Shown here: positions 19,447 through 22,400 of the stretch, piece after piece
Position numbering within the stretch: the stretch's first letter is position 1
Layout: the number at the start of each line of letters is the position of its first letter
From: Lama glama
Taxonomy: Eukaryota
DNA length: 64,000 nt
Assembly (NCBI GenBank): GCA_028534125.1
Contig: CM052851.1
Location: forward strand, 4,650,001 to 4,714,000
Direction of reading: 5' to 3'
Program-made: the position numbers and the translations under genes
Notes under the pieces: model-generated
The model's input: only the letters and a program-made list of their open reading frames with translations
What the model was told of the DNA's origin: nothing
The model's database searches: none

Positions 19447-22400
19447 CTAGCGCCCAGGGCGCCCACGGCCCCTCTTGGACTTCTTGGTCCCTGAGGGGGG
19501 TCGGATGGGGAGAGGTGCAGTGCTCGAGGGTGGCGGTGGTGGGGGTGCTGGCAGGAGAGGAGGTAGAGGAGGCTCCATGGGTTCTGGTGGGCCAGGGCTG
19601 GGCCGGAATCCCTCAAAGGGCGAGAACTTCAGGGGGCTGCAGGGGAAACCAAGGCAGAGTCAGCGCCTACTGGCATGGGGTCGGGAGGGCCGACTCCCTG
19701 CCTGGTGCTCAGGCTGTGAGGTCAGGTGCCCCTGCCGCTGGAGTCCCCTGCCCCGCGGTACCTGATGGGGGTCCGGGGGCTGCTGTTGAGGCGCCTGGGG
19801 GAGCGCAGCTTGGGCTGGAAGGAGAAGCCCTCTTTGATGCTGTCCAGCACGGAGGGTGCCACGTACGTGAAGCCCTGGAGGGGCAGAGGCAGGGCCGGGC
19901 GAGGCTCAAGGTCCATTGCTCCTTGGCCACAATCCCTGCCCGTGACCCTATAACCCTCAGGGCCCCGGACCTCACCAGGAAGGCCTGGTTGGCACTCTCA
20001 CTGAGGGCTGTGTCGTCTGGACTGTCCACTGGTGTCTGCCTTGTGAAGTGGGAGTCAAACTGGCTCACGTCTTCCTCTGACTGCTGTGGTCACCCCGGCG
20101 GTGGAGGGGAGAGGTCAAGGGTGTCCAAGGCAGGGGCCTCCACGCACCCGCCCTGGGGCCAATGGGACCTCCACTCACCAGACAGGGCCGGAAAGGGGGG
20201 TCCATGCGGCGGGCCAGGAGGTCATCCCAATTAATGTGCCGGAAGAAGGGGTGCCGCTGTGGGTGGAGTGCCCCCAAACTTGACAACATTTCCCCTTCCT
20301 TGGCTCCCTCAGAAACTCCCTGTGCCCTAAGGCCCACTCCCTGCACAGGGCACCCCTCAGGGCTCAGCCCTGCCCTCTTGTGGTGGCCCCAGACCCACCT
20401 GCACCTCAGCAGCGTCTCCTGGGCCACCCCCAATCCGTTGGCTGGGATTCCGCTTCAGAAACTGCAGGATAAGGGCAGAGGGTAAGGGTCTGCGGGAGAG
20501 GTACAATCGAGTGTTCCCGAATGGCCTCAAGGGAATGATGAAAGGTGAGACGAGGGTTGGGGGTTGGGGGGTTTGCTCTGGAGTGTGGTCTCCACCTACA
20601 GACACCCTTAGGACCTCCCAGATTTGGTCCAGTGGCCCTTCTCTGTGAAGCGTTTGCAAAGGCAGCTGGTTGCCGGCACGCCTCCAGGGCACTTCAGCGA
20701 GGCACTTCAGCGGTGCTCCACCTCGAAATCTGGGCGGGGCGCCTACCCACCCACTTTCGTCCCCAGTGATTGCCTTGTTGGTGAGAGTGACTAGTCTGTC
20801 ATGCACATTTCACCAATTAAGACTCAGACTAGGGACCTGTCTGGGGTCAGCAGCTGGTCTGCATCAGAGCTGTCATCTTGGACACCAGAGCCAGTGCTCC
20901 TTATCCAATGGCAGAGTCTACAGGTAGGGGTGGACCCGCAACTGGCCCAGGGAGACTCAGGAGCCCATGCAGGGCCTGTCAGGGGCAGGAGGGAGCCCAC
21001 CTTTTTGGTTTTTTTTGTTTCTGTTTTTGAGTAAAGGTAGATTTATTTAGAGAAATACATACTGTGTAGAGTGTAGGCTGTTTCAGAAGGCAAGAGAAAG
21101 GCCACAGGATGTGGGGGTTGGGTGCTCAGGTTAAAGTAAAAGTAGATACACACTACATAGACAGAGTGTGGGCCGTCTCTGTAGATGAGGGAGTGAGAGA
21201 GGCGGCCAGGAGCCCACCTTTTTGACGAGGTCCCGGGCATCCGGGGTGAGGTAGGGGGGCAGCACCAGCTTCCCTTTGATGATCTTGTCCATGGTTTTCT
21301 TCCGGTTCTCTGCAGTGAAGGGTGGCTGGAGAAGGCAGAGGGTGAGAGGAGCCTTGTGGGCCTCCCACCTGGCCCTGCCCCGCCCCAGGAGGGGGCCCTC
21401 CTCCTGCCCCCACTCCCGCCCCCGAGGAGGCTGGACTTGCCGATCCAGTGAGCATGTCGTACATCAGGGCGCCCAAGCTCCACCAGTCCACCGCCCGGTT
21501 GTGGCCACTGCGCACCAGAATCTCAGGGGCCCTGGGGGCCAAGTGGAACAGTCTGTCAGGCCAAGTCTTGCCTGGCTGTTCTCCCGACTGCTGGGCCCTA
21601 CCGTCTACCGCTTACATGTACTCGATGGTGCCACAGAAGGTGTGGGTGACGGCGCCCTCGTGAATCGACTCCTTGCACAGTCCAAAGTCGGTCAGTTTAA
21701 CGTGGCCTGAGGACGAAGTTACAGGGGTAGGACAGGGCCCCAGCCCACCCCACAGGGCTCCCTGGCCCTCCCAGAGGGTCCTGACCCCGGACTCGCAGCT
21801 GCGAGTGCAGCGGACGCATGCGCACCCTGGCTGTTGAGCATGATGTTCTCAGGCTTGAGGTCCCGGTAGATGATGCCTTGGGCGTGGAGGTGGCCCAGGG
21901 CCAGTGTGATCTCTGACAGGTAGAAACTGCAGAGACAGGACAGGATGAAGGCCAGGGGCGGGGTAGAGCCAGGCCCTGTCGGGGAGGGATCCCTGGACCC
22001 CCTCAGGAGAGAGGCAGGAGGTAACACCCACCAGGCCGTGTCTTCCAGGAAGATGCCCTCTCGCTCCAGATGTGTGAAGAGCTCACCACCTGCGACACAA
22101 ACATGTCAGCAGCTGCGTGCTGGGACCAAGCTCTTCTGCTCACTGACTCTTGGTTTCTTCTCGGGGAGAGTAGGGCTCATAATTCCCACCCTACCTGCCT
22201 CACAGAGCTGCCGTGGGGATTCAATTCAATTCAGCAAACATCTACCGATGCCTACGCGGTGCCTGGCCCTGTGTTGGGTGAAGCTGGGGACACAGAGATG
22301 AAGAGACCCAGCCACTGCCCTCAGGACGCTCAGTCTACTAGGAGACAGACACGCACGCAGCTGCTCTGATATGCCAGAGGCAACAGTTTCGAGAGCTTAA

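Follow-up and report, generated by a model that had tools for sequence, protein, structure and literature searches.

Background

Retroelement insertions beside splice sites are normally selected away or cause disease, and the question raised by the locus described here is how such an insertion could persist at an exon border and which splice site the affected gene now uses. The locus lies in a 64,000-nt stretch of the llama genome (Lama glama, assembly GCA_028534125.1, contig CM052851.1, positions 4,650,001 to 4,714,000 of the forward strand; the whole stretch is called the window hereafter and all coordinates refer to it), in which the border between exon 10 and intron 10 of RPS6KB2, the gene of S6 kinase 2 (S6K2), is present twice. 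A previous interpretation, made from the letters of the window and its open reading frames (hereafter the sequence-only reading), had attributed the repeat to a retroposition event of the LINE-1 (L1) type and had proposed that the gene may thereby have acquired a switch. Our best explanation, which we hold to be somewhat probable, keeps the retroposition and gives up the switch: an L1-type insertion duplicated the 5' splice site (donor), the upstream donor is mainly used, some transcripts use the downstream donor and are bound for nonsense-mediated decay (NMD), and the imported polyadenylation signal is largely silent.

The duplicated donor and the inserted element

The 16-mer GGAGCCCACCTTTTTG has two sites on the plus strand of the 64-kb window (20992-21007 and 21209-21224), and a pattern scan that allowed up to two mismatches still returned the same two. 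The pair is the sole exact direct repeat of at least 16 nt at a spacing of 60-600 nt within the window, while 30 first-order Markov simulations produced no exact direct repeat of this length and spacing. When the minus strand, which is the gene strand, is read directly, both copies give CAAAAAG/GTGGGCTCC (the slash marking the splice junction), i.e., the exon-10/intron-10 junction of RPS6KB2; the two donors lie 217 nt apart and are identical from -7 to +9. The duplication and its position on the junction were both correctly described by the sequence-only reading. The duplicated donor, AAG/GUGGGC, is of medium strength, matching the consensus at 7/9 positions and forming a U1 duplex of -8.8 kcal/mol vs. 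-11.8 kcal/mol for the consensus, and local RNA accessibility prediction leaves both copies almost fully paired and thus does not discriminate between them. A tandem segmental duplication was considered as the origin of the repeat and rejected, as the likeness drops to chance outside the 16-mer (12/21 positions).

The 201-bp insert between the two copies contains little G (11%), has a 5' end rich in C and T, and closes with an AATAAA hexamer and a degenerate A tail, AAAAACAGAAACAAAAAAAAC, which directly abuts the 3' copy of the target-site duplication (coordinates of all features in Table 1). The hexamer, the 13 nt behind it and the A tail reproduce the geometry expected of the 3' end of a polyadenylated RNA. 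The pre-insertion site reads ...CGTC/AAAAAGGTGGGCTCC..., i.e., the L1 endonuclease target in a TC/AAAAA form (the slash here marking the nick), provided by the Lys-Lys codons closing exon 10; TC/AAAA is a common variant of the L1 endonuclease consensus TT/AAAA. The locus thus displays the traits by which target-primed reverse transcription (TPRT) is recognized, namely a target-site duplication within 7-20 bp, a 3' poly(A) abutting it and a TT/AAAA-like target at the 5' edge of the duplication. Because the duplication measures 15-16 bp and comes together with an A tail next to its 3' copy and a TC/AAAAA nick site, the sequence identifies the insertion as an L1-type retroposition by TPRT. Here the sequence-only reading held up throughout: it had described an element of about 200 bp ending in AATAAA (21047-21042) and an A-rich tail (placed here at 21028-21008), an L1-endonuclease-like site at the upstream copy, which on the gene strand is the TC/AAAAA, and an origin by L1 TPRT.

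One further observation concerns the surroundings of the two donors. In the minus-strand RNA, GGGGCAGGAGG in intron 9 (21400-21410) has 11 nt of perfect complementarity to CCTCCTGCCCC (20982-20992), which stands directly after the downstream donor copy, and both are part of a 21-nt, 81% complementary inverted repeat. This inverted repeat would ancestrally have bracketed exon 10, and after the insertion the intron-10 partner stays beside the downstream donor only. The 11-nt complementarity may be due to chance in GC-rich sequence.

Lineage specificity of the insertion

The empty site was compared with other mammals at the level of translated read-through open reading frames (ORFs) only, for which a word search returned about 60 clusters of ORFs from genomic contigs of other mammals that read exon 10 into intron 10. 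In at least 12 of these clusters ...DLVKK, the end of exon 10, runs straight into VGSLLPLV..., as it does after the downstream copy of the window. Translated, 21000-20827 aligns with the intronic part of the read-through in clusters P0011, P0078, and P0079 (52% over 50 aa, E = 6e-12), and also with P0077 (E = 1e-11) and the P0003 group. By contrast, apart from the three residues that stem from the duplication, the 28-aa tail encoded by the insert is found in none of the approximately 60 orthologous clusters. When the 53-aa ORF containing this tail was used in a word search, it likewise retrieved empty-site orthologues only, and as the window's own ORF was absent too, the collection seems to be devoid of this lineage at RPS6KB2 intron 10. 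Because the orthologous ORFs continue like the downstream context and none of them carries the insert tail, the comparison indicates that the insertion is lineage-specific (probably camelid), that other mammals have the empty site, and that the downstream copy keeps the ancestral intron context. Both the lineage specificity and the ancestral context downstream, as proposed earlier, are therefore corroborated by the read-through ORFs.

The presence of the insert was also followed in sequencing runs, using 144 words sampled from 20300-21750. Fourteen DNA runs (7 studies, six organism labels) contain 0.88-0.92 of these words, whereas by arithmetic the share would cap near 0.83 if the insert and its junctions were missing. 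Since the observed shares exceed this cap, the insertion is real and widespread in the lineage, and not an assembly artefact. The perfect duplication and the moderately degenerate tail date the insertion poorly.

Source of the insert

BLAST found no second copy of the insert in the 64 kb, Rfam gave no match at gathering score in the window and none at E ≤ 10 on the element, ARAGORN found no tRNA, and exact-pattern scans of metagenome contigs with two 22-25-mers of the insert gave 0 matches. A head derived from Pol III transcripts (tRNA, 7SL or 5S) with an internal promoter, by which short interspersed elements (SINEs) are defined, was not found in it; the insert is possibly the tail of a 5'-truncated SINE. 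Camelid genomes were reported to contain about 1.6% SINEs, nearly all of them MIR (PMC8605555).

The window itself is unusually repeat-poor, with about 60% GC, and gene-dense. Its self-comparison (1-64000) revealed one tandem array but no pairs of similar interspersed repeats, no element derived from 7SL or tRNA was seen in it, and it has a single A/T run of at least 10 nt. A repeat-poor window without a young SINE fits the reported scarcity of SINEs in camelids (PMC8605555). Within the insert, two copies of ATCTAC(T/C)TTTACT are present on the minus strand (21135-21147 and 21030-21042), the second of which overlaps the end of AATAAA. They form the sole internal repeat of the insert and are marginal, as their score was reached in 5/300 shuffles; the pair hints at an internal duplication.

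Predicted fate of the transcripts

Translation of the gene strand past the upstream donor gives the 28-aa insert-coded tail and then a TAA (21133-21131), exactly as had been foreseen. Use of the downstream donor would produce an exon 10 of 325 nt with this TAA 130 nt ahead of the junction. Premature stops located more than 50-55 nt upstream of a later exon junction elicit NMD, and because the stop lies beyond this distance, the product of the downstream donor would be a standard NMD substrate. The second donor is present only in this lineage, and the evolutionary conservation by which regulated unproductive splicing is recognized was thus not found.

The sequence-only reading had listed three outcomes for the gene (the upstream donor, the downstream donor, and intronic polyadenylation), and insert-derived poison exons are an outcome beyond these. 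The AGs of the insert at 21126-21125 and 21079-21078 could, together with the duplicated donor, bound frame-shifting poison exons of 124 and 77 nt, respectively. Three acceptor-like sites were noted in the C/T-rich insert (21078-21179, minus strand), with the cut directly behind CCTCTCTCACTCCCTCATCTACAG at 21179, ...TTTAACCTGAG at 21125 and CCTTTCTCTTGCCTTCTGAAACAG at 21078.

With regard to intronic polyadenylation, no U/GU-rich downstream element was found in the 60 nt past AATAAA, a stretch made up of the A tail, the donor duplicate and intron sequence rich in C, as retroposition copies the hexamer and not the downstream element. The hexamer also has a U1-binding donor on either side, at a distance of about 170 nt in front and about 40 nt behind, and U1 small nuclear ribonucleoprotein (snRNP) suppresses nearby intronic polyadenylation sites, a process termed telescripting (PMC5499120, PMC10404622). 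Owing to the missing downstream element and the position between two U1 sites, intronic polyadenylation looks weak and a truncated kinase unlikely; the AATAAA is where the sequence-only reading had placed it, but the outcome that had been attached to it is not supported. A protein that ended at DLVKK would break off within the C-lobe and would be devoid of the turn and hydrophobic motifs as well as of the nuclear localization signal.

Which donor is used

According to the explanation that we favour, the 201-nt 3' end of a polyadenylated RNA was copied into the exon-10/intron-10 border of RPS6KB2 by L1-type TPRT, in the lineage of this genome (probably camelid) and not in other mammals. The first nick fell at TC/AAAAA in the Lys-Lys codons and the second 15-16 nt further on, at intron position +9, whereby the target-site duplication came to span the whole 5' splice site, from -7 to +9. 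Normal S6K2 mRNA would be made from the upstream copy, which is still joined to the exon, while the downstream copy would be a competent donor in its native intron context. A fraction of transcripts probably use it, to end either the 325-nt extended exon 10 or an insert-derived exon of 77 or 124 nt. Whatever is made from the downstream donor would contain a premature stop or a frameshift, and NMD should eliminate it, the leak through this donor being possibly sizeable. The imported polyadenylation signal would remain largely silent, given that its downstream element was not retroposed and that U1 snRNP sites flank it. The net effect would be at most a constitutive lowering of S6K2, tolerated since the loss of S6K2 is mild, with no regulated switch and no truncated isoform.

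The RNA runs give a hint against dominance of the downstream copy. Five of them contain 0.12-0.22 of the words, a share for which arithmetic predicts 0.16 from exons only and about 0.31 from exons plus the 217-nt extension, and because the observed shares are near the exon-only expectation, the extension is probably missing from the predominant RNA at steady state. Mice in which S6K2 alone is knocked out are viable, and their births follow the Mendelian ratio (PMC3721059); for this reason even a strong reduction of S6K2 could have drifted to high frequency.

Several points weigh against a minor role of the downstream copy. The word-share argument is a weak one, as it uses 144 words only, NMD lowers the extended form, and contigs drop rare variants. 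When identical 5' splice sites were placed 174-176 nt apart, the intron-proximal (downstream) one was used almost exclusively, both in vitro and in HeLa cells, and this bias relaxes as U1 occupancy falls (PMC3413131). By analogy, the duplicated-site experiments would make the downstream copy of RPS6KB2 dominant and not minor, and under the intron-proximal rule it should take at least a substantial share of the transcripts. The downstream copy also retains the ancestral, G-triplet-rich start of the intron.

Were the downstream copy to win altogether, most RPS6KB2 transcripts would carry the 217-nt extension with its TAA and be lost to NMD, which would make the animals natural hypomorphs of S6K2, and strong ones, whose S6K2 level depends on U1 occupancy and on the balance of SR and heterogeneous nuclear ribonucleoproteins (hnRNPs). 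We regard this as possible but doubtful. Mice tolerate the loss of S6K2 (PMC3721059), the two donors are identical from -7 to +9 at a distance of 217 nt, the downstream one has retained its native intron context, and an extended exon of 325 nt is of a size that fits exon definition; however, the coding sequence of RPS6KB2 displays no decay, the RNA runs lie near the exon-only word share (weak as an objection, for NMD would hide the extended form), and the enhancers of exon 10 itself adjoin the upstream copy. Double U1 occupancy is, moreover, a condition for the intron-proximal bias, and with a donor of medium strength (7/9; -8.8 vs. -11.8 kcal/mol) it may be uncommon. A related reading, to which we give similarly tentative credence, is that in line with the intron-proximal rule the downstream copy, or a poison exon ending there, takes a large share of RPS6KB2 transcripts and acts as a lineage-specific, NMD-coupled throttle on S6K2, with a setting dependent on U1 occupancy and SR/hnRNP levels.

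Conversely, the insertion could be neutral and fully silent, with the upstream donor alone being used and the insert removed together with intron 10. This appears unlikely: nothing disables the downstream site, an exact copy of a working donor in native context, and it would be surprising if it were never used (PMC3413131), while splicing is regularly disturbed by retroelements that insert at exon borders or close to them (PMC3219598). What could still be said in favour of silence is that insertions persisting beside splice sites are the survivors of selection, that RPS6KB2 is intact, and that the RNA word shares are compatible with exons only. The switch of the sequence-only reading, in which regulated intronic polyadenylation would generate a stable mRNA whose kinase product breaks off after DLVKK and is extended by the 28-aa tail, like the short S6K1 isoforms, we consider highly improbable. 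It can draw on a canonical AATAAA in sense orientation, on a stop 84 nt upstream of this hexamer, by which such an mRNA would escape NMD, and on the short S6K1 isoforms without part of the kinase domain, which bind mTOR and are biologically active (PMC3775402). Yet the hexamer has no U/GU-rich element behind it and lies between U1-binding donors, an arrangement suppressed by telescripting (PMC5499120), the product would end in the C-lobe (residue 243 of the 288-residue 4rlo_A chain) without the turn and hydrophobic motifs and would probably be unstable, and the insertion is lineage-specific and bears no sign of selection. Our best estimate is the explanation given at the start of this section, with the upstream donor prevailing and an NMD-bound leak of possibly sizeable extent through the downstream one.

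RPS6KB2 and other features of the window

RPS6KB2 occupies the minus strand from about 24851 to 19450 and has 15 coding exons, a count that confirms the number 10 given previously to the exon at the insertion. Its exons were searched one at a time. Exon 10 matched S6K1 structures (phmmer E = 5e-12, residues 207-243 of 4rlo_A), with RSK behind at E ~ 1e-3, and the exons neighbouring it matched the Pfam Pkinase family with single-exon scores of 19.9 and 29.8 bits, below the whole-protein cut-off of 31.7. Spliced orthologous ORFs reading DLVKK/FLKRNP... are found in clusters P0025, P0061, P0062, and P0072. The last exon encodes a proline-rich C-terminus with a nuclear localization signal, and a C-terminal nuclear localization signal and a proline-rich region have been described for S6K2 (PMC3721059). 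All 15 coding exons are open wherever they are readable, and the T-loop, the turn motif, the hydrophobic motif, and the C-terminus are present. Taken together, these observations assign the gene to RPS6KB2 and indicate that it is otherwise intact.

Two further observations were made along the gene. A run of 140 N (23123-23262) follows directly on AKIVRNAK and conceals the greater part of exon 5; coding sequence for DTAHTRAERNILE...YLILECLS was not found outside the N run. The donor of exon 9 (APEILV...MLTGS; 21439-21440, minus strand) reads ...GGATCG/GCAAGT, which makes intron 9 a GC-AG and not a GT-AG intron, and this GC donor appears to be conserved, as the read-through ORFs of other mammals translate ...TGS-ASPAS (GCA AGT).

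Table 1 Features of the RPS6KB2 exon-10/intron-10 region, listed in the direction of the gene
Feature	Position	Strand	Remarks
RPS6KB2 coding exon 10	21218..21325	-	Phase 0 end at 21218; translation ends ...DLVKK
Upstream copy of the target-site duplication	21209..21224	-	Authentic exon-10 donor: exon end 21218, GT 21217-21216
Retroposed element, 201 bp, sense orientation	21008..21208	-	Between the two 16-mer copies
First in-frame stop (TAA) past the upstream donor	21131..21133	-	130 nt upstream of the downstream donor junction (21001)
Acceptor-like AGs in the insert	21078..21126	-	AG 21126-21125 and 21079-21078, each behind a 78% pyrimidine stretch
AATAAA polyadenylation hexamer from the element	21042..21047	-	Sole AAUAAA/AUUAAA on the gene strand in 21276-20380
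Degenerate A tail AAAAACAGAAACAAAAAAAAC	21008..21028	-	17/21 A; begins 13 nt past the hexamer
Downstream copy of the target-site duplication	20992..21007	-	Exact donor duplicate: AAG 21003-21001, GT 21000-20999; ancestral intron then follows
Rest of ancestral intron 10	20462..20991	-	G triplets right after the downstream donor
Exon 11	20399..20461	-	Acceptor common to both donors; orthologous spliced ORFs read DLVKK/FLKRNP...

Elsewhere in the window, a tandem array at 6500-6722 consists of about nine copies of the 24-nt unit GGCCCAGCCACAGGTGAACCCCGT (63% match). As its period is a multiple of three, the array may encode an 8-residue protein repeat.

Comparison with known systems

The insertion resembles the products of L1-mediated retroposition of non-L1 RNAs (processed retrocopies, orphan 3'-end fragments, SINEs) in its duplication of 15-16 bp, the abutting A tail, the TC/AAAAA nick, the likely 5' truncation, and the empty site in other species. 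It differs from them in that the insert has no Pol III head, no Rfam match, and no second copy in the window, and in that its tail is short and degenerate. With the disease-causing Alu and L1 insertions at exon-intron borders, such as the NF1 series (PMC3219598), it shares the L1-endonuclease dependence, a position within a few nt of the splice site at an A-rich exon end, and the potential for cryptic-site use and exon extension. In contrast to the NF1 series, the duplication in RPS6KB2 regenerates a complete donor on both sides and no splice site is destroyed, and whereas the NF1 insertions are de novo pathogenic alleles, the one in RPS6KB2 is present in all 14 DNA runs examined.

The nearest experimental counterparts are the duplicated 5' splice-site substrates C174C, G176G, and Ad1CC (PMC3413131), in which, as here, a single acceptor could be joined to either of two identical donors (spacing about 175-217 nt) that would compete for it. 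RPS6KB2 departs from them in being a natural gene with exon definition, a medium donor (AAG/GUGGGC) and differing sequence upstream of each copy, and in that use of the downstream site would give an NMD substrate. The short S6K1 isoforms (h6A/h6C, p31S6K1; PMC3775402, PMC3721059) are comparable insofar as a C-terminally truncated S6 kinase is conceivable here by alternative RNA processing. The S6K1 forms, however, are documented proteins that arise from SRSF1-regulated cassette exons in RPS6KB1, while the S6K2 truncation is hypothetical, would break the kinase at another point and would have to rely on a weak-looking polyadenylation site. The locus is a real insertion of a known kind, and not a demonstrated switch.

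Conclusions

The rebuilding of the whole donor by the target-site duplication may explain why this insertion survived beside a splice site. The locus offers a clean natural test, in a living animal, of the choice that the spliceosome makes when two identical 5' splice sites stand 217 nt apart. If the upstream copy alone is used, the insertion would be an ordinary neutral one that could still serve as a presence/absence marker of the lineage. Use of the downstream copy would entail a lower S6K2 dosage in a group of domestic mammals, and should this use prove heavy, RPS6KB2 would be a natural counterpart, in vivo and in an mTORC1 effector, of the classic experiment with duplicated donors.

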